From Monocercomonoides exilis PA203 (Eukaryota; Protista; Preaxostyla), in NCBI GenBank assembly GCA_001643675.2, contig LSRY02000018.1:434001-498000 (forward strand): 64,000 nucleotides of DNA, given 5' to 3'. Position numbers and translations under genes: made by a program. The notes beneath the pieces were generated by a model. That model was not told where the DNA came from. It did no database searches and was given only the letters and a program-made list of their open reading frames with translations. Below, piece by piece: positions 1 to 37,000 of this stretch (position 1 is the first letter of the stretch; every line of letters starts with the position of its first letter).

Positions 1-878
1 AAATAGTCAGCAATCTTTTCGACCTGAAATGGCCAATTGTGGCGAAAGACAGCGAAGAGAGTCTTCAAACGACCAAAATAACGCTCGACTATGACTCGCC
101 GCGATGCCAGCTGAGGAGTTCCGACAGGTTTCGTAATATATGCATCCAAATCAGCCCTCGCCCCGATGTATGCCGAGTCCGCAAGCACCTTTGAGCCCCC
201 AAGCTGCGCCTTAAATTGTGGGAAATGCTCCTTGAAGATAGAAAAGTCGTGTGTTGAGCCGGTGTGAATGGAACTGACAGTACTGGCTGTTCCGGTGCGC
301 GGGTTTACACCAACTTCAGCCTTTACGCAGTATATATGATGTTTCCCGCTGTAGAATTTTGTTCCAAACTGCAAGCTTCCAGCTGGTCTGTTGATTGGAA
401 GAACTGTGCAGTCAACCACAACACCCACATCTCTCATATCATCCGATCTATCTGGTCGAAATGTGATGAACAAATCGATCAGATTGACTTTTATATTTTG
501 AACAATGCTGTGAAGTAGTTTTATTGTTGAATTTTGTGTTTCATAAAAAGAAGAAACGAGAAAATGAGTGAAGGATGTTGATCCAAGATGCAAAAAATTC
601 AAAAGAAGAAAGAGTTGATCCTCAAATTTTTCAATTGTTTTTTCTTTCCCACGATGAAGAGGGATTTCTTTACTTAATAACTGATAGAGCAAATCAAATT
701 CAAAACGAGCAAATCCAGTGAGTCGGAAAAATGCATGAGTTTTATCAATTTTCATATATTTGCAAGCAGATTCGATAAGGGATTTTTTTGCAGGTGAAGG
801 AGTGATGTGCACTGGTGCAGTGATAGCATTTCTCTTTTCCACTCTCTCTAAAATGTCTAAAAAAGTTGATTGTGACAT
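1..878 (-). CDS. DDE_Tnp_4-type (PIF/Harbinger/ISL2EU-like) transposase, copy 1; runs off the left edge
   Basis: Manual translation from ATG at 878: MSQSTFLDILERVEKRN...FFRLTGF...DQLFLLLNFLHLG...VVDCTVLPINRP...YSGKHHIYCVKAEVGVNP...STHDFSIF...VLADSAYIG...RRVIVERYFGRLKTLF. D-D-E motifs intact, no stop to the window edge (hence missing from the ORF track). Clearly paralogous to 5348..6127. Confidence 0.9.
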   Translation of the reverse strand, partial: MSQSTFLDILERVEKRNAITAPVHITPSPAKKSLIESACKYMKIDKTHAFFRLTGFARFEFDLLYQLLSKEIPLHRGKEKTIEKFEDQLFLLLNFLHLGSTSFTHFLVSSFYETQNSTIKLLHSIVQNIKVNLIDLFITFRPDRSDDMRDVGVVVDCTVLPINRPAGSLQFGTKFYSGKHHIYCVKAEVGVNPRTGTASTVSSIHTGSTHDFSIFKEHFPQFKAQLGGSKVLADSAYIGARADLDAYITKPVGTPQLASRRVIVERYFGRLKTLFAVFRHNWPFQVEKIADY

Positions 879-1079
879 TTTGTGAAAAAAATAGAAACAA
901 GCAAGTGAAATGACCCTTTAAAGATATTTTTTTTTAAAGTGATCATGACACCCAGAATTGAAAACATCGGATGTGACTGAGTCACATCCAATTTGACTGT
1001 ATCTTAATGGTATTAGATCGATCTTATTGGATGTTGACCGATCTAATGCCACTTGACGCAGTCAAATGAATTAAGTTCT
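1..1079 (-). mobile_element. Harbinger/PHIS-like DNA transposon Tn1 (5' end only visible)
   Basis: Terminus ...GAATTAAGTTCT (ends 1079; AGAACTTAA on the minus strand), followed by AGT. Subterminal block GTGATCATGACACCCAGAATTG (939-960) is shared with the element at 1789-2784. Encodes transposase copy 1. Confidence 0.75.
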
Positions 1080-1083
1080 AGTA

Positions 1084-1783
1084 GTCGGTGTGGAAACCCG
1101 AGCCAGGGAGGAAACCCGAGCCAGTGATCTTTTTTCAAATATTTTTTATTTTTTTCATCGATGAACAATTTGAAAAAAAACGAAATAATTTCACATTTCA
1201 ATACATATGAATATGCTGGTATGCATGTGGTTTTCGTGTTTCTTTTTTGAATGTATCTATGAAAAAAAATTATTTTTGATCATAAATTTTTTTGTGTGAA
1301 AATTTTTACTAATTTTGAAGAAGAAAAATTTTCACAATTTGTCATCATTTTTGTATATTATACACACATACAATTCATTTACGCGTGTTTTCAATTTTCT
1401 TCAGTGGCTGAATGAGAAATGAAAAATTTTCTATGTAATTAATTCGACTTTTCACACAGCCACTGAAGAAAATTGAAAACACGCGTAAATGAATTGTATG
1501 TGTGTATAATATACAAAAATGATGACAAATTGTGAAAATTTTTCTTCTTCAAAATTAGTAAAAATTTTCACACAAAAAAATTTATGATCAAAAATAATTT
1601 TTTTTCATAGATACATTCAAAAAAGAAACACGAAAACCACATGCATACCAGCATATTCATATGTATTGAAATGTGAAATTATTTCGTTTTTTTTCAAATT
1701 GTTCATCGATGAAAAAAATAAAAAATATTTGAAAAAAGATCACTGGCTCGGGTTTCCTCCCTGGCTCGGGTTTCCACCCCAAC
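1084..1783. mobile_element. Fold-back palindromic MITE A1
   Basis: Arms 1090-1410 and 1457-1777 (321 bp) are reverse complements, with a 46-bp spacer. TA on both flanks (1082-83, 1784-85). Terminal motif GGAAACCCGAGCC doubled with an 18-bp period. Confidence 0.9.
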
Positions 1784-1788
1784 TAAGT

Positions 1789-2784
1789 AGACCTTAAACG
1801 AATTGAGCGGCTCAATTTGAATTGACAAAGTCAAAACGTTTTTAGTTTGTTTTATTGGTTTTGACTCAATCAATTCGGTTTTCCCTCAATCTTTTTTGTG
1901 ATCAAAAAATCAAAAATTATGTATCAATTTTGATCATAACTATTTGATGTTTTTTCTATTTTCGGTTTGAAAACAGCTTGTTTTCAGTTATTTTTAAATA
2001 TGTGAATCTTTAATATATTATTAATACATTTGCGTTAGGTTTTTTTTGGATCATAAATAATATGTCAATAGTTTTGTTTCTGACGTTTTTATTTGTTGAT
2101 CGTTTGGAAAATGGCTTTTAATATTCAAACATTAGTTTTTTAGTATTTTGAAAGGTGGAAATGTTTGTTATTTCCTTTCTTTTATTTCAGTTTTATTTTG
2201 AGAACATGTTTTTGATTTGACAATTGTTTTCATGAAGCCTTTTTTGAATAACAAACAATTTAAGTGATATTTATTCTTTTTTTCATTTAAAATGTTTGTT
2301 TAAAGCTATGTCAGAGTTATTAGAAACTTTTTTGTTGTAACTGTCGTTTTTTTTCTTTTCTTTTCAATAATGTTTATTATTTTTGATTCTTTAATGATCA
2401 TTAAATTTTTTTTCGCTTCATAACTATTTATTATTAACAAAAAAATGAAAAGAACAGAATAACTTTACGAAATAATGTTTTTTTCAAATAAAAATTGAAA
2501 TATGAAGAATTTTGAAAAAGTCAAAACATTGAAACTTTCGTATTTTTTAAAGGAAATAATTTTTATAATAATTCTTATATTATATTATTCATGTATTGAT
2601 GAAAAATTGACAAAAACATAACTCTTTATTTTATTGATTTTCATGTGATCATACACCCAGAATTGAATCAATCGGTCTTGACTCAATCAAAACGGTTTTG
2701 AGTCAAACTTTTTGGTTTTATGAACCACTAATTGGTATTTGATTGAGCTAACGGGTATTGATTAAGTAATTTCGTTTAAGTTCT
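1789..2784. mobile_element. Non-autonomous relative of Tn1/Tn2 (element B)
   Basis: TIRs AGACCTTAAACGAATT / AATTTCGTTTAAGTTCT. AGT on both sides (1786-88, 2785-87) is a candidate 3-bp TSD. Subterminal GTGATCATACACCCAGAATTG (~2646-2666) matches Tn1. No ORF. Confidence 0.8.
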
Positions 2785-2785
2785 A

Positions 2786-3413
2786 GTGAGGGAGGAAACC
2801 CGGGCCGGGGAGGAAACCCGGGCCAGTGATCATTTTATAAAATATTTTTCAATTTTTTCGTCGACAAACAATTTTCAAAAAATGAAATTAATCCATATAA
2901 TAATACATGTGAATATGCAGGTGTGTGTATTTTTTGGTGAAAATTTTATAAAATTTTGAAGAAGAAGAATTTTTCATTTAGTCATCATTTTTGTATATTA
3001 CTCACACATACAATTCATTTACACATGATTTCAATTCTCTTCAGAGGCTTGTTGTGTAATATGAGAAATTAACCCGTTTCGCAACAAGCCTCTGAAGAGA
3101 ATTGAAATCATGTGTAAATGAATTGTATGTGTGAGTAATATACAAAAATGATGACTAAATGAAAAAATTCTTCTTCTTCAAAATTTTATAAAAATTTTCA
3201 CTGAAAAAAATTTTTGATCAAAAATAATTTTTTTTCAAAGATTCATGTAACAAAGAAATACGAAAACCATACACACACCTGCATATTCACATGTATTATT
3301 ATATGGATTAATTTCATTTTTTGAAAATTGTTTGTCGACGAAAAAATTGAAAAATATTTTATAAAATGATCACTGGCCCGGGTTTCCTCCCCGGCCCGGG
3401 TTTCCTCCCTCAC
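2786..3413. mobile_element. Fold-back palindromic MITE A2 (same family as A1)
   Basis: Arms ~2786-3054 and 3082-3413 are reverse-complementary apart from a ~55-60-bp deletion in the left arm. TA flanks. Doubled GGAAACCCGGGCC motif with an 18-bp period. Interior is homologous to A1. Confidence 0.9.
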
Positions 3414-3416
3414 TAA

Positions 3417-6325
3417 AGAACCGAAACGATATGGCCATGTAATAACGTATTGTGAACGTCAAATCAATTTAGATCTTACTATTTCGTAGCGATTAATTCA
3501 CAACGGTTGTGGTTTAATTACGACGGGCTGTATCACGGATTTTTGGAAATGATGTTTGTTGATCATATATTTTTCTTTTTTTCCATTTTTAAAAAATAAC
3601 GTTTCAAATATAAACAGCATAAAGATATGTTTTGTATTATTGAATTTTGAATGTTTATTCATGATCATTATGTTCAACTTTTTTTCAGATCTTACGATTT
3701 TTTAAAAATATCATTTTTTTGACTTATCAAGGAAGAAAACATAACCTACATCGGAAGTTCGATGTGAATTTGCTTTTTTAATGAAAGTGTCCGCGAAACA
3801 AAGATTCACAGAAATGTTTTTTTCTTATAAAAAAAACTTTTGCGTTGAATATCACTAATAACATTTTTTCATATCATTTTTGGTTTTGAACGTACAACAA
3901 AGTTCTCTTTTTTTAAGTTATTTTTTCAAACAAGAATCGTTTTTTTAAATAATTGTTAGTTGTTTATTAAGTTAAATAATTGATGAAATATATACTAAAA
4001 GGAGATGGGAAAACTTTTGGAGAAAAAGCAAACGAAATTCATAAAAGAATTTGAGAAAAGATATTAATTCCGATGAAAAATATATAAAGGACAATTATTT
4101 AAGAACTGTTAACATTCAAAAGATACTCGAGAACAGTTTGCTTGTGTTGGTATTGTTTTGAACTGGGAACTTTTTGATTTTTGCAGGATTTTTCTGGTGC
4201 TTTTGTAATACACAAACAATTGTTGTCAGGAGTCTGGCTGTGTTCTGTTTGAATAAACTGAGTGGAAGAAGGAGGTCAGATGGAGGAATGATGGCAGTGT
4301 ATTTTCTTTGAAGGCATTAATTGTTCCAGATTGAGAGATCGTGGTTGCGATAATGAACTTGAAGGTCTTTGCTTTCCCAATGTTGGTTGAGACGAATGAA
4401 AACTTGGATGAGTTTCAATTGCACTTGACGTTGATGGTAGAGAAAAAATTGAAGGTGGAGAAGAAGTGAAATGAGAGGTGTTAGTGGAAATCACTCGTTC
4501 ATTCATAAATGTTTCTTGTGATGATTGCAGCTCAGATGAATGAGAAGGTATTGTTTGATCCGAAATAAGAATTGTTGTTGGAGGTTGTGGAGATGCAGAT
4601 GAAGCTGGTTGAGTTGTTGATGAAGATGAGGTTTCATTTGAAGAAGAAGAAAGGTTTTGTATATGTGGGAATAGAACAGAAGAAGAATTAGCTTATGCTG
4701 AAGTTGAAAAAGAAGAATTATATGAAGAAAAAAGTTGCTTGGCAGACTTCCATTGATTAGGAAGCAGCCATTTAAAAGAAAAATCAATATCATCTGAAAC
4801 AAAACCTTCATCGCTTTCAGAAATCGATGAAATTCGAGTATCTTCATTCAAAGTTGTCACCACTTTCTGATCTTAACTGCTTTTGCAATTTTTTTCATTG
4901 ATCTGTGCATGAGGTTCAGTTGTTGCATCAGCTGAATAAAAAAATTAATATGGTATTTGAAAAAAATAAAAATTTAATTGTTAACATAAATAAAGTCAAT
5001 ATGGGTAAAATATGAAAATTCAAACTATCTTCAAGTGCATGTAAAGATGTTACACTTGAAGTTGGAATTGAACTTGGGTTCAATCGATTAAGTAATCTGG
5101 CTCTGTATTTTTAATTTGTTAGTTCCTTTTTCTGTCTTTTTTCCTCAACTTTTGTAATTAGATTAGAGAGGAAAAGTTGATTAGCCTCGAAATCTGCCTC
5201 CGATAATGGGTTTTGCAATATGTGATAATTTGTTAAACAGCATGCGACGTAAAAGTATTCAGCAATTGAAGAAATCTTTAAGGGCCAAGGTCGACGAAAG
5301 ATTGTGAATAATGTTTTCAAACGACCAAAAAAGCGTTCGACGATTTCTCAATGTGCTGCAAGCTTTGGTGTCCCAACAGGTTTGGTTATTATTGCTCTAA
5401 ATTCACTTTCAGCACCAATATAATCCGAATCTGCCATGATTTTTCCTCCTTCCAAACGTGCTGCGAATTGAGAGTAATGCTCACGAAACATGACATAGTC
5501 GTGAACTGCTCCGCCATGAACCTTGCTAACTGAACTTGCAGTTCCTGTTTTTGGATTCACTCCCACTTCAACTTTTGCACAATAAATTTTGTGTTTTCCA
5601 CTGAAGCAATCGCTTCCACAATTAAATTCTTTTCCTGTTTTGTTTACCGGTAAAACTGTACAGTCCAAAACAAGTGCCACCTCCTCCATTCCATGAATTC
5701 TGTCAGGTCTAAACGTGAGAAACACATCAAATAAAAAAACTTTGATGGATTGCAAGATCGAATGAATTAGTCTAAGAGTTGCATCTTGCGTTTTTTGAAA
5801 TGGTGAGGTGATGAGATGAGAAACAGTTGGTGATCCAAAATGAAAAATATTTAATAACAAGAATAACTGATCGTCCAATTTTTCAATAACTCTTCGTTTA
5901 CCCGGATGAGGGAATATTACAGGTTGAACCAGACGAACAAGAAGATCAAACTCACTCTTTGTGAAACCAGTCATTCTGAAAAAGCCCAAATCTTTGTTAG
6001 TGAATTTGGACAATGCGTTTTCAATCAATGACAGTTTCTTTTCTTCCTCTTTTTGGTGAGTATTTTTCGGAAGAACATTTCTTTCTTCAACATGAGTAAA
6101 AATATCCAAAAAATTAGATTGACTCATTTTTAGAATAACATTGAAAGAATTGATCGAATGAATACATTATTTGGAAAAATTTTTGTGATCCCCTTGTCCC
6201 ACTTTTGATTTAATTCATCGTGAACGAATCAAAACGTTTTTTCTTTGATTTTTTTGTTTTAGCACTTGATAAAAAGAGGCTTATGAAAATAATAACAATT
6301 GACGATAACACAACGTTTAAGTTCT
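3417..6325 (-). mobile_element. Harbinger/PHIS-like DNA transposon Tn2, full-length but inactivated
   Basis: Termini AGAACCGAAACG (3417) and CGTTTAAGTTCT (ends 6325) form an imperfect 12-bp TIR matching Tn1/B termini. Contains transposase copy 2. Flanks (TAA / ACA) are not a perfect TSD. Confidence 0.75.
4099..6127 (-). pseudogene. DDE_Tnp_4 transposase copy 2 with in-frame stops and a probable Ser/Thr-rich C-terminal extension
   Basis: ORFs 5348..6127 and 5111..5320 are one frame: ...KLAAH*EIVERFFGRLKTLF. The TGA aligns with CGA in copy 1 and lies just before the catalytic Glu. The frame continues through a putative intron (4932-5025) into 4276..4506 and ends at TAA 4099-4101. The extension is less certain than the core. 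Confidence 0.85.
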
Positions 6326-7039: not shown

Positions 7040-7732
7040 CAGTCAAAACCTGATATTGTCATATCGAATACAATTTCATTCGTTTGTTGTCACATTTTTA
7101 CGATACACAGACATTTTTTGCTAGTTTTTTATTCATTTTCCACAGGATATAAATACTGGGCTGAAAATATATAATCACATTTTTTTATATTATGTGTGTT
7201 TTTTCAATGAAAAATCGATTTTTTGATCAAAAATTTCTAATTTTCACTTTTTCAAAAATGTGCTTGAATAAGAAATAATAATTTATATGGGTGATTCTTT
7301 TTGAAAAGTCACAAATGTTAAATTAACAAATAAATCCAAAATGTCATGTTTTGCTATATGTTTTGTTTACAAATATCAAACTTCACTAAAATGGAATCTA
7401 TCGCTTCAAAATGCTATTTCAAACATTCTTGAGGAGATTTGTGAGCTGAAACAGAAATTTGAGCAAAACAAGAAATTTTTGATATATTTGAAAATTGAAC
7501 ATTTGTGACTTTTCAAAAAGAATCACCCATATTTAAGAAAAAATTAATATCGCAAGTGAAAAATGCGTTTGTTTGAAGAATTTACAAATATTAAAAATCT
7601 GACCCAACAATAATTAATTTATAAATTGTTTTTTTCTTTTTTGTGAGTGAAGTATCATCGTATGTTATCACAATCGGATATAGTCGCAAAAAGTCGTTCA
7701 AAACGCGATGTTATTATACCCGATTTTGACTG
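7040..7732. mobile_element. pogo/Tc1-like MITE (TA|CAGTC...GACTG|TA)
   Basis: TIRs CAGTCAAAACCTGATAT / ATACCCGATTTTGACTG with TA on both flanks. A diverged homolog starts at 61226. Confidence 0.75.
7288..7529. mobile_element. Nested Tc1/mariner-like MITE
   Basis: Perfect inverted repeat TGGGTGATTCTTTTTGAAAAGTCACAAATGTT at both ends (7285-7319 / 7498-7532 including flanks) with TA flanks. Absent at the equivalent position in the 61.2-kb homolog of the host MITE. Confidence 0.85.
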
Positions 7733-7780
7733 TAATCCCATTTTTACAATGAAAAGGAACAAAAACTTAATTCTGAATTA

Positions 7781-9685
7781 CCATTGGTAGAAAACCAGGT
7801 AGTTAGTGGAAAACCCGGCAGTTGGTTATTCGAAATTGTCAATTTTTTCAACGTTAAAGTCATCTCAATTAATTTTAAACATTTTTATATTTGTTTTGAA
7901 AGGTGTTTGCGATAAAATATTTAATGATTGCAGAAAAAAACTTTTCGAAATTTGGAGAGAAAGTTATTAACTTTCATTTGATCAAAACCATTAAAATATG
8001 AAAAGCATGCCAAAAACTCAGCTACAGCGTGTTGTTCATGTCTGTCAATAATATTTCATTAAGCAATTAATAACAAATTATATTTCTCTCACTATACATC
8101 AATTTTTTTTAGTGAACGAGCACACAGGCAACATGTTTTGATTGGAGCGTGCTTTTTGGTTGCAGGCTTTCCAAAAGAAAGGTTACAGTTTGTTATTTTT
8201 TGTACTATGTTTATTTTTTTTATAATTTGTGATGTAATTAATTAAATTCTTTAAAAGAAATTGTTTATAGCAATATTGTTCGACGTGAGTATTTTTGAAG
8301 TTTATGATGTTTAATTTGTGTAACAGTGGATGATACTTTGGTTTTGAATTACTAATACTAACTTCTAATTGTAATTAAAAATGTGATTTGTTTAAATAAG
8401 TATTGATTGTTAATTTTGAAAAATATTATCATTTGTAATTTCTTCAATTCTTTTTATATACAATTATTTATCTTTTTCTGTTATTAAATTTCTTGAATTC
8501 AAACTCAATACATTATGTCTATTGTTTTTATATTTCAAAATTCTTTTTTATCACATAAATATAAGATAAATATATTTGTTTCATATTTTAACAATTTTTT
8601 TTTAGACAACAAGAATTCAGTAGTTTAAATGTTTATAATCAATTCTGAAGTGAATATTAGTGAAATGAACATAAAAAGAAATTACAAAAATTATTTATTA
8701 TTAAGTATGTTCATGAATAAATTCGAAAATAAAGAAAAATGAGATTTCTTTTACAGAACATAAAAAACGTCATCTGTTTTTGTAATTCGTAATTCACGTT
8801 ACAATATAAATATATTATGAACCAACAGAATTTACAAAATTTGATAAATAATTCTTGTTGTCTAAAAAAAATTGTTAAAATATGAAACAAATATATTTAT
8901 CTTATATTTATGTGATAAAAAAGAATTTTGAAATATAAAAACAATAGACATAATGTATTGAGTTTGAATTCAAGAAATTTAATAACAGAAAAAGATAAAT
9001 AATTGTATATAAAAAGAATTGAAGAAATTACAAATGATAATATTTTTCAAAATTAACAATCAATACTTATTTAAACAAATCACATTTTTAATTACAATTA
9101 GAAGTTAGTATTAGTAATTCAAAACCAAAGTATCATCCACTGTTACACAAATTAAACATCATAAACTTCAAAAATACTCACGTCGAACAATATTGCTATA
9201 AACAATTTCTTTTAAAGAATTTAATTAATTACATCACAAATTATAAAAAAAATAAACATAGTACAAAAAATAACAAACTGTAACCTTTCTTTTGGAAAGC
9301 CTGCAACCAAAAAGCACGCTCCAATCAAAACATGTTGCCTGTGTGCTCGTTCACTAAAAAAAATTGATGTATAGTGAGAGAAATATAATTTGTTATTAAT
9401 TGCTTAATGAAATATTATTGACAGACATGAACAACACGCTGTAGCTGAGTTTTTGGCATGCTTTTCATATTTTAATGGTTTTGATCAAATGAAAGTTAAT
9501 AACTTTCTCTCCAAATTTCGAAAAGTTTTTTTCTGCAATCATTAAATATTTTATCGCAAACACCTTTCAAAACAAATATAAAAATGTTTAAAATTAATTG
9601 AGATGACTTTAACGTTGAAAAAATTGACAATTTCGAATAACCAACTGCCGGGTTTTCCACTAACTACCTGGTTTTCTACCAATGG
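7781..9685. mobile_element. 1.9-kb fold-back element C
   Basis: Arms ~7779-8617 and 8850-9687 (~840 bp) are near-perfect reverse complements, with a ~232-bp spacer. TA|CCATTGG...CCAATGG|TA. Doubled 19-bp terminal motif (GTAGAAAACCAGGTAGTTA / GTGGAAAACCCGGCAGTTG). No ORF. Confidence 0.9.
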
Positions 9686-9955
9686 TATTTGATTTTTAAA
9701 AAGTTGACTGTTCATGTTTTTCAATTTTTCAAATAGAATGGGCTATGTTCATAATTGAACAGGTTCTATATTTATTTCAAAATAGAACAATTCAGGTCCA
9801 CAAAATGTGACATTGGCAAAAGGGGGTAATTCAGCTAGGAATGATTTTTTTCTTGAAAACACCTGAAACTGTATCGAAAATGAGCTTTATGATCTCATTA
9901 ATTAAGATCAGTTATTAAATTCTATTAAAAAATAAAATTATCTACCAACGAAATA

Positions 9956-10353
9956 CAGATATCGCATAAAATACCGGACATCGCACAAAATACCGGACAA
10001 GATCGATTTCTCAATAACTGCAAGAGGAATATTTCTTGCAATTTTTCTAAAAGTATTTCTCATCAATACAAACTCAATTGATAAACGAGATTTTCAAAAT
10101 TGCTTCATATGTGCTCAAAGAAAATTGTTTTTAAAATCTCGGAGAGAAAATTAAACTCCTATTTTCCCAAAATTTCGATAATCATTTTCTCTGAGCACAT
10201 ATGAAGCAATTTTGAAAGTCTCGTTTATCAATTGAGTTTGTATTGATGAGAAATACTTTTAGAAAAATTGCAAGAAATATTCCTCTTGCAGTTATTGAGA
10301 AATCGATCTTGTCCGGTATTTTGTGCGATGTCCGGTATTTTATGCGATATCTG
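9956..10353. mobile_element. Fold-back palindromic MITE D
   Basis: Arms 9954-10117 and 10192-10355 (164 bp, one mismatch seen). TA|CAG...CTG|TA. Doubled 19-mer ATCGCAYAAAATACCGGAC. Confidence 0.9.
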
Positions 10354-11011
10354 TAAATCTTAAAGAGATAAAAATTTTAGATCAAGCCCATCATTTAATA
10401 TATTAATGTTTTCTTTTTTATATTTTTTTCCTATGTCTGAATTTTATTGAAAAGTTCCACGACTTTGATTTTGTCCCACAAAAGATCAAAAAATATCGAT
10501 CATTCCGTTCCCATTTTAGTTTTATAAATGCTATTTGTTGTTATTTATTTCGCTTTTTATAGAAAAATAATAAACAAATTTGTTTATATCATATAAACTT
10601 TTATCTTTATTTTGAAATATTCATTTGAAAGATTCTGCTTTCCAGCTATTTGAGTCAAATGAGTTGCATGTTTTTATTTTTTCATTTTCATTTCATCTTT
10701 TTGAATATTCGCTTTGATTTTATGAACAGGAGCTAAGATTTTATTATTTTCCTTTATGAAAGATAAATTATATTTGATTTGCTTTTATAATTGAATTTTT
10801 TTAAGAAATTTTCAAACAGGAAAAATACATCAAAACTACGCTCGTAACAATTGAAAGATACTCGAAAAATTGAAAGCATTGAGCAATAATAAATTTTATC
10901 ATCCAGAAATGCAACATGAAATGTTATTTTTCAAAACAAATCTTCATTGTTACAAACTCAAAAATACAATCTCTTCTCTTATAAAGATTCAAAAAGTTTG
11001 TATCAAACAAC

Positions 11012-15730: not shown

Positions 15731-18700
15731 CTATTATGAAATTGATAAAACAAATGTTTACAATCAACTGAGAACTATTCAAAAAAAAAAGCATGATTGA
15801 ATAATAAATTGAAAATTAAATTTATTTGTTTTAATTAATTGGAAACCACTAAACTTATCCGATTAACAGTTGCATCGATTATGTGTGTTCTATCTTTGCA
15901 TTCATGTTGAGTTCAGACTCATAAAGCAAAAGAAAAATGCTATTCAAATGAAATTTTGAATTAACATTGAAAATCAAGTTTGTCAGGATAAAGAATCGAA
16001 ACATACATTGTACTTTTTGTTAATAAACAATTGCAAAGTAGTTCAATCAAGTGATACTCTTTTTCATTGAAAAAATGATATATAAATTTTGATCAAAAAA
16101 TATGATACATAATTTTTTGTGAAAGAGTATTTCCTCTTATAAAAAGTTTGTTATGAATTAACAAACATCACCGTGAAAATTCGTTATTATCATTTGAATA
16201 ATGGTAACGGAGTGTGAAATAATTAACTTTCATGAGACAAATTTTTGATCGGATGTCACTTTTCAAAAAAATTTTGACCTATTAACTAATTCTAACAATA
16301 GAACTCTATGAATTAGGGTTAGTCCAAAAAGAAATTTCATTTTTACTTCGTTTATAAAGATATTAGGGCTTCAATACGAAAATAACTTTTTTATCATAAT
16401 TCAAAAATTGAAAAAATTATAAGGTTCTTTCTCTGAAAAATTGATGATGTTAATAGACTTTATCTTTATTGTACAAATGATTTTCTGGTAGGAATATGAA
16501 AAAGAAATCGTTATGATATGAATCTTTAACTGGTCGTATCAAGCCCATTTTCCGTGACATTTGCAGACAATTCGTTTTCAGCACTTGATAATGACACTTT
16601 TTTTGTTTTCTTTTTTAAACATTTAATGTTCTTTTCAATATTTGAAGAATATAATTTTTGGAAAACGAAAAAAATATTTTCAATAATAAATTTTTTGTTG
16701 AAAAATTACATTTAAAATTTATCATGATCAAGATTTCTGATTCATATCCTCTTGTTTGTCAATATTGTTTTGAAACGGAGAAAGAGAATACAGACATGAG
16801 TTTTGGGCTGCTGAGTTAATATCACAAGACCATTTGTTTACCAAAAAAACAAAAAACTTTCAAGATTATTTTGTGAATTCAAAACAAAAGGATATGAAGA
16901 AAGTTAAAATTGTTTGAGACAACAAGAAGGAAAAAGAGCAGTGGATGTGATTTAATGAACACAATCGCTTCTATTCACAATGAATCGTTTCATACAAAAT
17001 GAAATTTTGGATGACACCCACAGGATAAAAAACATCAGCAAGCTTTCAAAAATACAATCATGAAAGTTAACATTATTGAATATTTCTGATGAATATATCT
17101 TTTCGAAAGAATTTTTGATGGAAAGATTTCAGGTCAAATATCCATTGTTTATTCTCAAAAAAGAAAAAAAATCGTTCCATGAAATTCAATAAAATTTTTT
17201 CTGAATAAAGAAAGAAAGGAAATAATTATTTTTTCGTGTTGAGTGATTGTTTTTGTTTTTGAATACAACCAATTGCAAAATTATTTGATTTCCATGAAAA
17301 ACAGAAATGTTGGGAGATTCATTGAAAAAGTTAATTTTTCTTTTTCAAAAATCTTTCAAAGATCATAAACCTTAACATAATGAATTAACATCTCAAGCAA
17401 CACTTTGAAAAATTGCTATTTAAAAAAGGGATGGAGATAAAATAGATTTTGATGAAAACAAAAATGTGTTGAATTTTCACATAAATAAAAAAACAATGAT
17501 GAACATGTTAATTCGAATAACTGGAAAATAATGTGCATTTGTTTTTCGTGTTCAGAAAAGAATGTTGCATCAGTGTGATTATTATTGAAAACATGAATAT
17601 TGGTTAACACATTTTAACTTTTTTTTATTTTTTTCGCAACTATGAAACAAATTTTATTTTGTTTCAATTTTTGTTAAGGTTGTTGTGTGAAAACATGAAA
17701 AAGAGAAAATAAATATAAACATTGTTCTTTCTGAGAATCTGAAATGCCATTATAAAGGTTGATTTTGTGAAAATGAACTTGAACAATCGAATCGATATTT
17801 TCAAACAGAAACAAGATGAAATTTAAAAACATTTCCTCCTTGAAAAAGAAAATAACAATTTGAAACAACTTTCTGAACGAGCCGTAATTCAAAGAGTCAC
17901 AAAGAAGTGTTGCAAATAAAAGGTTGATTTCATTGAACCGAAATCATCAAATGAAGAACAATTCCATTCACAAATGCATAATTTGAAAAACATAAAGAAA
18001 TGTGGATGCTTTCATTTTTCAATATTTCTCAATTTGATTTGTTGTTGGGTTGTTGTGAAAAACGCGATTTGATAAATTCAGAATCAAAAAGACAAAAAGG
18101 CAATAAATTCTTGCTGGATTGCAAAGAAATTCTGCTTTTTCAAATATCCTTTTCGAACAAACACAAATGAATTCTTTTTTCAACATCGAAATTGCAAACA
18201 AATGCAAAATCAATCACATCCAATGACTATATATCACAAAAAGGAAATCAACCAAAACAGAAATACATTTACAAAAGCAAAAATACGAACAAAAGAAACA
18301 ACTCAAATCTTGACTCGAGAATTACAATGACTTGGAAAAAAGGGAAAAAAAGTTGAATGGATAAAGACAATTATAAAAAAAAAAAATAGAAAGAAAAAAA
18401 TCAAGAAAAAAGGAAAAAAAGGTGAGAAAAAAGGGGGAAGAAAGTAATTAAAAAAGTGAAAAACAATGAGAAAAATAGAAAGAAAAACAATGAGATTAAA
18501 AATGAGAAAAACAATGGGAAAAACAATGAGAAAAATGCTTTAATAAAGTTAAAGAGAATGATAAAGAAAGATAAAAAAAAGATCGGAAAGGAAAATGTGC
18601 TGAAAAAGAAGAAGAAAGCAATTCATTTGTGGGCAATCGTTCAACGCAAATGTTTCAACTCAAAAGCTATGTCACTCTTCATAAGAGCAAAGCTGGATAA

Positions 18701-28424: not shown

Positions 28425-29664
28425 TCTTCTCCTTCTCCTCCTTCTTCAACCAAATGCAAAAAACAACAAGAACCATTCAATCATCCATCATTGCCCTTTG
28501 GATACCCTCCATTTTACCCATTTCTTTTCCCTCCTCAGTTTTTGCCTTCACCTCAGCAGCAACAGCAGACACAGCAAAATGAATCGAAGAAAACACAGAA
28601 ATCGACAAACATTGCAGAAAAAGAAGAAGAAAAAGGAATGAATTCATTGAATGGAAAAGGAAAAGCCACATGTGATTTGTTTGGTCAAGAGCATTCTTCG
28701 AAGCAGCAGAAGAATCCAAAAGATAGGAAAGTTGACAATTCCAAAAATGATGGGACGAAACAGACAAGAAGGGAAGGCAACATCGAAGATGAATTGGTTG
28801 CTGAGCTGAATGATGATACAACAGAAGAAGAAAATGATGATGATGATAAAGATAATGATGACTCAGAGGAAGAAGAAGAAGAAGATGGGGTTGGAGAAGA
28901 GAAAGAGATTGAGAAGTTTTTTCCCTGTGAAAATGAGGAAGAAATTCAAAATGAAAATGAAAATGAAATGCAATATGAGACATCAGAAAACAAGGAAGAA
29001 TATCGAGGGGAAGATGAAACAGATAGAACAAAAGAAGAAGAAGAAGAAGAAGAATTCCAAGAGGGAAAACCAAAGTCAACAGAAAAGAAGACATTTGTGT
29101 TTGGGTTTGACAGCCAGTTTGGAGAAAGGATGGCATTTGATGACGGACTGGAAGAGGAAAGAAGATGGAAAGAGGAGAAAGACAGGCTGGATGAGGCAGG
29201 CACAAGTGAAGCAACAGACTTTTCACAGAAACAACAGAAACAGGGAGATTTCGATGAAAAGAGGCAGATTCCTCAACATTCCAACAAATTTGAATCCAGA
29301 AAGAGGCAAAAAGCACCTGAAGACAGAGCCTTTGGCAGAAACTCTGTGTTTTTGACATCGTATTCGCGACTTGCCTCAGCTTCGTCTGGCCTTGCCATTC
29401 CATCGGCATCTGAGAATGGCAGAGGAAAAGAAGGAAAAGAAGGGAGAAGAACAGATAATCAGGACAATGGGGATTGTTTCAATCATTTATCATCAACATC
29501 AACATCTTCTTCTTCTTCTCTCCAATCTCCCCATCTGCACAAGACACACGCCTCTCCTCGCTCTTCGTTGCATTCAGTCGAAGACCCAGTTTTGTCGATG
29601 ACACTGCCTTCGCATTCAGGAAGTGAGCTTCTTCGGATGAAAGAGATGCAACAACAAACAGCTG
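28425..29664 (+). repeat. 1.24-kb inverted duplication of 35487-36726
   Basis: Mirror-image ORF sets (coordinates sum to 65151). Only about three substitutions seen by eye. Confidence 0.95.
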
Positions 29665-31411: not shown

Positions 31412-32826
31412 TTATTTCAGCTGCAGCAGTTCTTTGATATTTGCTGGCATTTCTTCAATTTTTGTTCCATAGAATTCCTGAATGTCTTTCAGCATCTGTC
31501 CATCTTCTTCTGTGACAAGATTGATGGCAATTCCTTTTTTTCCAAAACGGGCTGATCTGCCTATTCTGTGAATATATAACTCTTTCTCCATTGGCAAGTC
31601 ATAGTTCACAACAAGCGAAATCTGCTGAACATCAATGCCACGCGACAACAAATCTGTTGTAACGAGCACTCTGTTTTTTCCATCTCTGAAATCTTGCATT
31701 ATACGATCTCTGTCTTCATAATTCATTCCACCATGAATCGAACTGACTGTGAACTTTCTGCTCCGAAGATCTTCAGTGATACAGTCCACTTTGCGCCTGG
31801 AGTTGCAGAAGATGACACATTGTGCAACCTGGACTGAATCGTAAAGGTCGAACAGTGCTTCCTCTTTGAATTCTTCTTTTTCAACAGCCACATAGAATTG
31901 GCGCAGCCCGTCAAGTGCGAGTTCATCGCGAGGAACCAAAATTTGAACAGGATCGTTCAGAATCTGGCGAGTAATCTCAATGATTTCTTGGGGCATAATT
32001 GTGCTCATCACAACTGTTTGTGCATTCTTTGGCAAATTTGAGTTGATATCTAAAATCTTATTCTTAAACCCTTGACAAAGCAATAAATCTGCTTCGTCGA
32101 GCACAAATATTCTCAGATGAGAAACATCAATAATTTCTGAACGAATCATATGTACCATTCTCCAAGGCGTCCCAACAATTATGTGTTGAGGAGCTTCGGA
32201 AACTTTCCTTGCTATTTTACTGATGGCTTCTCCTTCAACAACTCTGAGAATGTTGAGGCCCTTCAAAAATTTTGCCATTTTTGAAATAACCTAAAAAAAA
32301 AATCGTAAACATCATTAAATGCTTAAAAAAAAATGCAAACATTGTGTGACTGCATTGCAAGTTCTCGAGTTGGAGTGAGAATCAACGCTTGCGTGAAGTG
32401 GTAATAAGGATCCACTTTCTGCAAGCAAGCGATTGAGAAAGCGGTTGTTTTTCCTGTTCCAGGCTGGGCTTGAGCAAGAAGATCACGCCCTCTAACAATT
32501 GGCAAGATTCCTTTTTGCTGAATGAGTGTCGGAGTCTCAAAGCCATATGAATAAACTCCACGAATCAATTCATCCTTCAAATGCATTTCCTTAAATGTTT
32601 TGCACAATTCACGCGAAGTTTCCTCAATTTCCTTGTCCCCTCCCGTCAAAGCAGCACGCTGAACTGGGTAAGAAGGTGAAGGACGTGGTGATTGTCTTCG
32701 AAAAGGAAACACATTTTTTTGGTGATGAGAACATTTCCCAAAGTTCAATGAACGGAATATTTCCCCAAATAAAATAATAAATGTGAATAAAGAAAGAAAT
32801 AACAAATAGTCACATGTTGTTGCCAT
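31412..32826 (-). CDS. eIF4A: eIF4A-like DEAD-box RNA helicase, divergent paralog
   Basis: Q motif [45 protein letters not shown] 50-bp GT-AG intron at 32291-32340 joins the two ORFs in frame. 5' exon structure uncertain. Confidence 0.85.
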
Positions 32827-34070: not shown

Positions 34071-37000
34071 CTATCTCTCGTTGTCTTCCTGCTCTTCAGA
34101 AGCTCGCTGCAAGATCTTCTGCAGAATCGCCATTTTGCGCTCTTGCTTCTCTTTTTCACTCGCCAAAGAGGCACCCGACAAGACAGACTGCTTCTGCTTT
34201 CAAATGAGCACAAAACACACAAAAGAATAAGCGCAACATGGAAATCGAAAATAATTCGAAAAATGAATGGAATTATAAACAAATGCACATTTCAACACAT
34301 TCATAAATTGTAATTCAAAAGCAAAATGTTCAAAAAAAAAAATGAAAAAGAAAAAGAAAAAGAAAATTGAGAGAGAGAGAGAAAGAAAGAAAGAAAGAAA
34401 TCAACAAAAGAATAACCTGTTTTGTCTGTGAAGGAGATCTTGTCTTTTTGTTGGTGCTTCTTTCTTTGCTTTTGGTTTTCGTGTTCCTCTTTCGGCTGCT
34501 CAAATTCATTTGCTCTTTCTCTCTTTCCCTCCCAATCCTCGTCGAGTTCTTGAACCTCGCCTTTCCTGAAATCAGCAAAAAATCTTTCTCCCCTTTTGTC
34601 TCTGCCCTTTCCCAGTCTCCATCCACCCCTCCTCTCCTATTCCATCCTGTGTGCTTCCTCATCGCTGAACTCGTCCCTGAAGCCGATTGTGTTTTCAGAG
34701 GCGAGCCAAAATAGGCTCCTGGTGCTGCCAGCGATGAAGAGCCACAAAACTCCACAGAGCTGCCAAGTGCATGCTCATACACAATATCATCATCATCACC
34801 TTCTTCTTCTTCCTTTTCATCAGTTGCATGTGAAATACCATTCATTCTCTCTTTCTCCATCCCAATCACAGCACTTTCGCTCAGAGGCACCCATCCGTCT
34901 TCCGACACATCTGTCTGCTGTGCCTGTGCAACACTCTGCTCAGCTGTGCTTTGGCTGTACTGAATGAATGGATGCTTATTCTCAGAGGAAGAGGAAGAAG
35001 AAGAAAAGGAAGAAGAAGATGATGATGGATTGTTGTCATCTTTGGCAGAATCAGAAGGCGTGCTCACTCCATCAGAAATATCAGTCGAGCCAACAGCATT
35101 CGATCTGGATGGAAGACCATCTGCAAGAAGAGTCGAAATGTCGTCTTCTTGAAAAAGATTGACTTTTTGCTGTGTTTTTATCGAGGAGGACAGCAGCGAA
35201 GCAATGGGAGAAGATGCAAACATGTTTGGATGTGCAGAAGGATCAAGTGCAACACCAGATGAAATGAATTGGGCTGATCTCTGAGGAAGCTGTGGATGTT
35301 CCAAAGAAGAAGAAGAAGAAGAAGATGATGATGATGATGATGAAATATTCTGTTTCTCTCTTTGCGAGCAAAAGAAAAGATCGGCTGGAGGTGAATGATG
35401 TTTGACTGCTCTGAAAAAGGAATCTTCTTCGAGAGGCGAAATGGAAGAGCTGTTGAAAGAAGAAGAGGAGGGAGAAGAAGAACAGTCAGCTGTTTGTTGT
35501 TGCATCTCTTTCATCCGAAGAAGCTCACTTCCTGAATGCGAAGGTAGTGTCATCGACAAAACTGGGTCTTCAACTGAACGCAACGAAGAGCGAGGAGAGG
35601 CGTGTGTCTTGTGCAGATGGGGAGATTGGAGAGAAGAAGAAGAAGATGTTGATGTTGATGATAAATGATTGAAACAATCCCCATTGTCCTGATTATCTGT
35701 TCTTCTCCCTTCTTTTCCTTCTTTTCCTCTGCCATTCTCAGATGCCGATGGAATGGCAAGGCCAGACGAAGCTGAGGCAAGTCGCGAATACGATGTCAAA
35801 AACACAGAGTTTCTGCCAAAGGCTCTGTCTTCAGGTGCTTTTTGCCTCTTTCTGGATTCAAATTTGTTGGAATGTTGAGGAATCTGCCTCTTTTCATCGA
35901 AATCTCCCTGTTTCTGTTGTTTCTGTGAAAAGTCTGTTGCTTCACTTGTGCCTGCCTCATCCAGCCTGTCTTTCTCCTCTTTCCATCTTCTTTCCTCTTC
36001 CAGTCCGTCATCAAATGCCATCCTTTCTCCAAACTGGCTGTCAAACCCAAACACAAATGTCTTCTTTTCTGTTGACTTTGGTTTTCCCTCTTGGAATTCT
36101 TCTTCTTCTTCTTCTTCTTTTGTTCTATCTGTTTCATCTTCCCCTCGATATTCTTCCTTGTTTTCTGATGTCTCATATTGCATTTCATTTTCATTTTCAT
36201 TTTGAATTTCTTCCTCATTTTCACAGGGAAAAAACTTCTCAATCTCTTTCTCTTCTCCAACCCCATCTTCTTCTTCTTCTTCCTCTGAGTCATCATTATC
36301 TTTATCATCATCATCATTTTCTTCTTCTGTTGTATCATCATTCAGCTCAGCAACCAATTCATCTTCGATGTTGCCTTCCCTTCTTGTCTGTTTCGTCCCA
36401 TCATTTTTGGAATTGTCAACTTTCCTATCTTTTGGATTCTTCTGCTGCTTCGAAGAATGCTCTTGACCAAACAAATCACATGTGGCTTTTCCTTTTCCAT
36501 TCAATGAATTCATTCCTTTTTCTTCTTCTTTTTCTGCAATGTTTGTCGATTTCTGTGTTTTCTTCGATTCATTTTGCTGTGTCTGCTGTTGCTGCTGAGG
36601 TGAAGGCAAAAACTGAGGAGGGAAAAGAAATGGGTAAAATGGAGGGTATCCAAAGGGCAATGATGGATGATTGAATGGTTCTTGTTGTTTTTTGCATTTG
36701 GTTGAAGAAGGAGGAGAAGGAGAAGAAGAAGAGGATGATGATAGCGAAGGAGAGAAGGACGATGGATATACAGAAGTTGCTTGTGGAGGTACAAAATACG
36801 GTGGATGCAGATGAGGAAATGCGCCGACTGAATGAGAAGGATAAGGGAAAACAGGAAATTGTGGAGGGAGAACAGAAGACTGAGCCTGGGGCGCTTGCGG
36901 AGGCGGGCCTACAGACAGCAGGTTCTCACCTTCGACGTCGCTTGCGATCAAGTCTGTCAGTTTTGGCGGCATCGGCTTTATCTTCGTGTGGAGCAGCTTT

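Follow-up and report, generated by a model that had tools for sequence, protein, structure and literature searches.

End-to-end stacks of two unrelated types of DNA transposon in Monocercomonoides exilis probably arise by repeated integration just upstream of tRNA genes

The stretch of the Monocercomonoides exilis genome analysed here (LSRY02000018.1:434001-498000 of assembly GCA_001643675.2; 64,000 nucleotides, hereafter the window) opens on five transposable elements, named Tn1, A1, B, A2 and Tn2, that are joined end to end. This arrangement had been proposed in a first-pass annotation made from the letters of the sequence, and it is borne out by the sequence and by a repeat scan; the four junctions read exactly GTTCT/AGTA/GTCGG, CAAC/TAAGT/AGACC, GTTCT/A/GTGAG and CTCAC/TAA/AGAAC. 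The same annotation saw a non-destructive array of two unrelated transposon types with no element inside another, and this too is upheld: the types are Pangu-type (DDE_Tnp_4 transposase, ANT duplication) and pogo-like (DDE_1 transposase, TA duplication), and both Tn1 and Tn2 are colinear with copies elsewhere in the genome. With the sequence to the left of the window included, the full order is tRNA-Ala, Tn1, A1, B, A2, Tn2 and then unique DNA, with a total span of 7586 bp. The elements of this 7586-bp stack contain 469 TA and 817 ANT sites, none of which has been hit by an insertion. The GGAAACCCGNGCC doublet occurs eight times where 0.06 occurrences are expected, so the pattern is not due to chance. 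The features are listed below in window coordinates, with class assignments as predicted.

1..1079, minus strand: Tn1, of which the window contains the right-hand 1079 bp; the whole is an autonomous transposon of Pangu type (PHIS), 2340 bp long, that reaches window position -1260.
1080..1083, no strand: junction AGTA, where Tn1's AGT flank and A1's TA duplication overlap.
1084..1783, no strand: A1, a 700-bp fold-back (palindromic) non-autonomous pogo-like derivative with TA/TA flanks.
1784..1788, no strand: junction TAAGT, made up of A1's TA and then B's AGT duplication.
1789..2784, plus strand: B, a non-autonomous Pangu-type element of 996 bp whose AGT/AGT duplication is perfect.
2785..2785, no strand: a single A between B and A2, which makes up the right AGT copy of B together with the first two bases of A2.
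2786..3413, no strand: A2, a 628-bp fold-back derivative of a second pogo-like family.
3414..3416, no strand: junction TAA, the TA of A2 plus one A.
3417..6325, minus strand: Tn2, a 2909-bp Pangu-type element and the distal member of the stack, with unmatched flanks TAA/ACA.

No further copy of either family was found within the window. We therefore drew on nine additional loci of M. exilis, each about 20 kb long: Pangu-type transposase proteins led to L001-L005 and pogo-like transposases to L006-L009. The loci were thus retrieved by their transposase genes and not by tRNA genes, and L010 denotes the window's own locus. Termini were mapped by iterative BLAST, with a terminus profile and with a pattern for GGAAACC/GTTAACC ends. 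Genes for tRNA were called with Rfam and aragorn, the intron-bearing tRNA-Lys of L004 being missed by Rfam at default settings and recovered with permissive filters or with aragorn -i. A terminus-pattern match in L009 proved to be a tRNA. A tRNA-Glu proposed by aragorn at window positions 32362-32477 was not accepted, its 23-nt intron being oddly placed and Rfam reporting nothing there.

The tRNA-Ala gene lies just outside the window on the minus strand (-1339..-1267; 54.2 bits in Rfam, also called by aragorn), and 6 nt (TTC ACT) lie between its 5' end and the left end of Tn1 (-1260), making Tn1 the member of the stack nearest to the tRNA. The same geometry recurs throughout the sampled DNA: all six tRNA genes carry a stack, each turns its 5' end towards it, and the stack begins 6-9 nt upstream of the mature 5' end. 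The other five are as follows.

tRNA-Leu, in L002, 9 nt to the stack.
tRNA-Lys with an intron, in L004, 9 nt to the stack.
tRNA-Tyr with an intron, in L005, 9 nt to the stack.
tRNA-Asp, in L008, 9 nt to the stack.
tRNA-Asn, in L009, 8 nt to the stack.

No two of these six tRNAs share an anticodon, which means that the tRNA is not itself a passenger. Every stack with a visible proximal end terminates at a tRNA gene, the stacks comprise from five to at least eight elements, and in all nine anchored cases, Tn1 and Tn2 included, the Pangu transposase gene is directed at the tRNA.

The first-pass annotation had called for the flanks of other copies of both families to be tabulated for adjacency, and a census shows that 53 of 58 Pangu-type termini face a transposon end or a tRNA start. 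The partner is another Pangu end for 34 of them (30 at exactly 3 nt), a pogo-type end for 14 (at 1-8 nt) and a tRNA start for five, leaving five others. Among 22 pogo-type termini, 14 face Pangu ends, two face each other and one faces tRNA-Asp, and four of the remaining five form the distal end of a stack. The commonest junction overall, two Pangu ends 3 nt apart, is absent from the window. One triplet frequently repeats along a whole chain, as does ACT between at least six elements in L001, and in L002, L008 and L009 the duplications peel off cleanly outward from the tRNA (in L002 as a pogo TA, ACT, ATT and ATT). The junction types of the window recur elsewhere: the kind found at 1080..1083 (..GAC T ACT AGAMC) is present at L009 9919/9924, and the single-base, T-type junction found at 2785 is seen again at L007 11244, L002 7443, L001 6987 and L006 11604. 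The commonest spacers between pogo-type and Pangu ends, T and TANT, represent the two ANT registers closest to the pogo TA site, which is what a narrow distance interval combined with an ANT rule predicts. It should be noted that the interiors of the elements are accessible to other families, because a Merlin/IS1595-like element (with a DDE_Tnp_IS1595 gene; L006 11965-13350) is nested with an 8-bp duplication in a Pangu copy whose uninterrupted twin lies at L004 11828-14138.

The transposons that begin with AG and end with CT had been tentatively likened to a Pangu-like subgroup of PHIS on account of their termini and an ANT-type 3-bp target-site duplication. The groups of the PHIS superfamily are set by their duplications, the Pangu group being defined by 5'-ANT-3', and Pangu elements have terminal inverted repeats (TIRs) of 11-40 bp starting with AG or GG, most families being about 3.5 kb long with two open reading frames (ORFs) (PMC4482050). 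In M. exilis the flanks conform to A-N-T at 50 of 58 termini; in the other loci the two flanks agree for each element that can be judged, and matched pairs of duplications accompany B (AGT) and copies in L002 (ACT, and ATT twice), L003 (AAT), L009 (AGT) and L001 (ACT); the TIRs start with AGAAC or AGACC, a few with GGACC or TGAAC; and the transposase carries DDE_Tnp_4, the Pfam domain for DDE enzymes of the PIF/Harbinger/IS5 type. By domain, duplication and TIR the assignment of these elements to Pangu-type PHIS transposons holds, as far as sequence can tell. Autonomous M. exilis copies are 2.3 kb long with a single 391-aa ORF. All close homologues of the transposase come from M. exilis, and an exhaustive search returned as more distant relatives only metagenomic proteins, at 31-38% identity, and proteins of Blattamonas nauphoetae. 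Two contigs of the latter (L011 and L012) carry DDE_Tnp_4 genes about 31% identical to Tn1 and have 1191 bp in common at 98.7%; no tRNA gene was found within 10 kb of these and no AG termini at the ends of the shared segment, and they are uninformative on conservation.

The three Pangu-type members of the stack differ in their state of preservation. Tn1, examined as a whole element, has an intact 391-aa ORF, its DDE_Tnp_4 domain lying on the minus strand (E-value 2.3e-17 within the window, 2.5e-21 for the full product), and it is 97.4% identical to L001 9360-11698. In Tn2 a single in-frame stop divides the DDE_Tnp_4 domain into segments at 6127-5351 and 5347-5114, identity to the nearest copy (L007 1646-4556) is no higher than 89.6%, and an extra region of about 1.1 kb holds ORFs without a Pfam match; Tn2 is apparently the oldest member of the stack. 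B has no ORF, is bounded by the 12-nt TIRs AGACCTTAAACG and AGAACTTAAACG, which match at 11 of 12 positions, and shares 99.0% identity over 814 bp with L001 1-813; its AATTGAGCGG end faces the tRNA, as does that of the copy at L009 17499-18489. The triplets beside Tn1, ACT on the left (-1263..-1261) and AGT on the right (1080-1082), differ in their middle base; they are reverse complements of each other and not a direct repeat, so that the inverted repeat is longer by three bases. This mismatch could be due to chance (1 in 4), to mutation or to recombination between copies of different stacks.

Neither A1 nor A2 contains an ORF, and both are near-perfect palindromes: the arms of A1 are 337 nt long and 99% complementary, and A2 has outer arms of 152 nt (99%) and inner arms of 90 nt (98%), its left TA borrowing the last T of B. 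The two are only 74% identical to each other. The terminal 48 nt of A1 are 90% identical to the TIR of a full-length DDE_1 element at L001 5322-6985, and the 40-nt terminus of A2 agrees with that of the DDE_1 element at L007 9549-11242 at about 37 of 40 positions, counted manually. These autonomous partners are 1.65-1.7 kb long and encode a pogo-type transposase with DDE_1 and HTH_Tnp_Tc5 domains (8.1e-13 and 1.1e-4, respectively, for the L001 element; protein P0021 has both domains as well). TA precedes 21 of 22 pogo-type termini, and it stands on both sides of A1 and of the elements in L001, L005 and L008. Because they share their terminal 40-48 nt with DDE_1 plus HTH_Tnp_Tc5 elements and because of the TA before 21 of 22 termini, A1 and A2 are best regarded as putative fold-back miniature inverted-repeat transposable elements (MITEs) of two pogo-like families.

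We propose, with a probability of roughly 0.8, that the stack results from repeated integration of DNA transposons into one narrow interval before the tRNA-Ala gene. This interval would lie about 4-11 bp upstream of the mature tRNA 5' end (-4 to -11), near the start site of RNA polymerase III (Pol III), and would be used by two unrelated kinds of element, the Pangu-type PHIS transposons with their ANT sites (Tn1, B and Tn2) and the pogo-like elements with their TA sites (here the MITEs A1 and A2). Each newcomer would insert between the tRNA and the last occupant, older elements would move outward, and only the remnants of duplications, 1-8 nt in length, would remain between abutting ends. The target would survive every insertion because the promoter of a tRNA gene is internal and the site would be set by distance from the gene rather than by the upstream sequence. 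A fixed interval before the tRNA would thus account for the abutment of ends, for interiors left intact and for triplets used more than once, with no need for transposon ends to be recognised. On this model the distal element should be the oldest, and the state of the two autonomous-type copies agrees in age, the distal Tn2 being the most decayed (89.6% identity, stop codon) and the proximal Tn1 having kept its intact 391-aa ORF. By analogy with Ty3 and TRE5-A (PMC5911963), the cause may be tethering of the transposase to the Pol III initiation complex (TFIIIB/TFIIIC). We lean towards the view that two, perhaps three, unrelated DDE lineages (Pangu-type, pogo-like and a GTTTTCATTTAACCGG-ended family described below) dock on this complex independently, which would give sequence-independent, distance-measured integration at tRNA starts, orientation-specific in the case of the Pangu elements.

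Several observations weigh against repeated integration before tRNA genes. As the loci were picked around transposase genes, the tRNA genes sampled are those that lie near transposons. The stacks of L001, L006 and L007 extend past the ends of their 20-kb loci, within which no tRNA was detected. Within the stack of the window only B has a perfect duplication, Tn1 being flanked by ACT/AGT and Tn2 by TAA/ACA, and stepwise reconstruction fails by one base (an extra A) at the A1/B/A2 junctions as well as at the flanks of Tn1 and Tn2. Identical spacers are uninformative on the order of insertion, and in this small sample B, which has a 99.0% identical copy in L001, seems no older than Tn1 (97.4%). 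Orientation is also less regular outside the Pangu genes: the B-like MITEs of L001 occur both ways round, and pogo genes are directed away from the tRNA in six cases and towards it in two.

The first-pass annotation attributed the array to reciprocal end-targeting, in which Pangu elements would prefer ANT at or beside the ends of residents and pogo-like elements would prefer the TA at Pangu ends, so that arrays would grow independently of tRNA genes. A precedent exists in the targeting of inverted repeats (IRs) by IS30 (PMC9333248), and the part of the idea that concerns the sites themselves stands: Pangu duplications do use ACT/AGT made from a pogo-type end plus TA, five junctions (...GAC/T/AGAAC...) employing the ACT formed by the last two bases of the pogo end and the T of TA, and 30 Pangu-Pangu junctions hold exactly one triplet. 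The chain of at least 11 kb in L001, which has no tRNA in its 20-kb locus and MITEs both ways round, and the mid-stack position of B with its perfect duplication and 99% twin are also what such growth would lead one to expect. As a cause, however, end-targeting leaves unexplained the tRNA anchor, the constant end distance of 6-9 nt at all six tRNA genes and the nine-out-of-nine orientation of Pangu genes. Pogo-type and Pangu ends lie anywhere between 1 and 8 nt apart, which means that no fixed sequence register is recognised, and the context that the junctions share (T-ANT-A at most) is too common in AT-rich DNA to single out ends when 817 ANT sites in the stack went unused. IS30, the nearest analogue, likewise has abutting ends with a spacer as long as the duplication, but it is a bacterial copy-out-paste-in element with an active IR-IR junction (PMC9333248), whereas the M. 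exilis chains mix families and are anchored at tRNA genes. We consider end-targeting unlikely as the origin of the stacks; it may be a minor addition to the tRNA anchor, and one that is not needed.

Two further explanations were weighed. If insertion were random and only copies in harmless space, before tRNA genes or beside other elements, survived in a gene-dense genome, many insertions would have to be harmful, and with about 62.6% of the complete chromosomes coding (PMC8767320) many would be. Insertions inside resident elements would do equally little harm, yet Pangu and pogo copies provide no instance of it, even though the Merlin-like element does sit inside one, and selection cannot produce a fixed distance of 6-9 nt, an orientation rule or the exact re-use of a triplet; we regard this explanation as very improbable. 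To the notion that the junctions formed once and were then copied, as a composite unit or by segmental duplication, or that repeats were mis-assembled, we give next to no credence. The same pairing of a pogo with a Pangu element does occur in both L001 and L006, but the pogo element is inverted relative to its Pangu neighbour between the two loci and the outer flanks differ, which indicates separate events and rules out a copied pogo-plus-Pangu unit. Junction partners also vary by locus, the Pangu family joined to an A2-type end in the window being another than in L007. As to mis-assembly, GCA_001643675.2 rests on long Nanopore reads (PMC8767320). The Logan contigs available for sequencing runs of this strain are shorter than the stack; they nevertheless bridge the A2/Tn2 junction, without mismatches and in three runs, as well as the right boundary at 6325, and they cover the three other junctions, with no bridging contig among those listed. 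Loose contig ends reveal other copies of the junction types of the stack, as in the case of a Tn1-like end that continues into AGT and then a pogo-type terminus. No empty-site joints were seen in the short contigs of one sample, data that are uninformative on this point.

Retrotransposons of compact genomes are well known for integrating at the starts of tRNA genes, the textbook cases being Ty3 and the TRE and DGLT-A elements of Dictyostelium. The tRNA-directed elements in Table 1 of a 2018 review are retrotransposons only, with no DNA transposon among them (PMC5911963); our full-text literature searches found no description of DNA transposons homing upstream of tRNA genes, and the M. exilis genome paper mentions neither tRNA genes nor stacks (PMC8767320). 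What would be new here is targeting of the Pol III start, known so far for retrotransposons such as Ty3, by cut-and-paste transposons of two superfamilies. The closest counterparts in behaviour are the Ty3/gypsy retrotransposons Ty3, Ty3p, Tj1 and Tyl3/Ylt1/Tyl6, which like the M. exilis elements insert a few bp from the start of any tRNA gene, at a position measured from the gene, and are safe there by virtue of the internal promoter (PMC5911963). Those, however, are retroelements with a retroviral-type integrase bound to TFIIIB, whereas the M. exilis elements are DDE cut-and-paste transposons with TIRs and short duplications. With their strict Pangu orientation and their five to at least eight elements, the M. 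exilis stacks would work like Ty3 without being a member of that group. In Dictyostelium, TRE5-A, TRE3 and DGLT-A provide a case of tRNA-directed insertion that is convergent in unrelated classes within one protist genome, as in M. exilis, but all of them are retrotransposons and they insert 13-54 bp upstream, or downstream, of the gene (PMC5911963).

Among DNA transposons, the Pangu group shares with the M. exilis copies the DDE_Tnp_4-type transposase, the 5'-ANT-3' duplication and TIRs that begin with AG; neither stacks nor a preference for tRNA genes have been described for it, and the M. exilis copies are smaller, with one ORF (PMC4482050). Dada elements are likewise DDE DNA transposons tied to multicopy small RNA genes, including those for tRNA, but they recognise a specific sequence inside one kind of gene, which is disrupted, and make 6-7-bp duplications (PMC3706591), whereas the M. 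exilis elements lie outside the gene and upstream of many tRNAs. The M. exilis pogo-like elements resemble pogo/Tigger of the Tc1/mariner superfamily in their DDE_1 and HTH_Tnp_Tc5 domains, their TA duplication and their non-autonomous derivatives that share TIRs. Ordinary pogo elements use TA sites with little regional preference; those of M. exilis differ in being located at tRNA starts or in stacks, and in having derivatives that are near-perfect palindromes of 630-700 bp.

If repeated integration before tRNA genes is correct, the tRNA-start strategy would be convergent across classes of element, having arisen also in oxymonad DDE transposons of two superfamilies. Docking on the Pol III complex, if it takes place, would be a first among cut-and-paste transposons: a natural form of safe-harbour integration by means of a small, single-protein transposase. 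The strategy could be examined in a system made up of a 391-aa transposase and a MITE of 1 kb, far simpler than a retroelement, and would be a lead towards targeted, gene-sparing integration of DNA. For annotation, it would account for the gap-free transposon chains joined by ACT/AGT in M. exilis and for tRNA genes at the edges of repeat blocks.

A number of other repeats were seen in or near the stacks. A third family, represented at L009 11579-13474, lies inside a stack between two pogo elements, has TIRs of roughly GTTTTCATTTAACCGG and GTCTTTCAAATATCCGG and encodes a 455-aa protein without a Pfam match; it is found again at L007 1-1646 (88.7% identical), where it abuts the Tn2-like Pangu copy. 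The motif AGCGTGTCAAATACCCGGGAA stands beside a Pangu end at L003 9476-9496, and in read contigs it also follows another copy of the B-type end (among the loose ends at window position 2786); it probably marks the end of a further family of repeats.

Fold-back repeats are also present in the window outside the tRNA stack, at 7767-9699 (arms of 836 nt, 99%), 9938-10371 (205 nt, 92%) and 7285-7532 (84 nt, 86%). The first has subterminal GGAAAACC-type doublets as in A1 and A2, its sequence being otherwise different, and the last has relatives at L001 19662-19909, L006 9193-9441 and L002 1986-2232 and in L008 and L003. A perfect palindrome with 816-nt arms that are 100% complementary occupies L001 16824-18560, apparently inside a Pangu-type element that starts at 16118. 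Farther into the window, a sequence longer than 70 nt that starts with a GAA repeat is present twice, at 29064 on the plus strand and, 7 kb away, at 36087 on the minus strand, which suggests a large inverted duplication.

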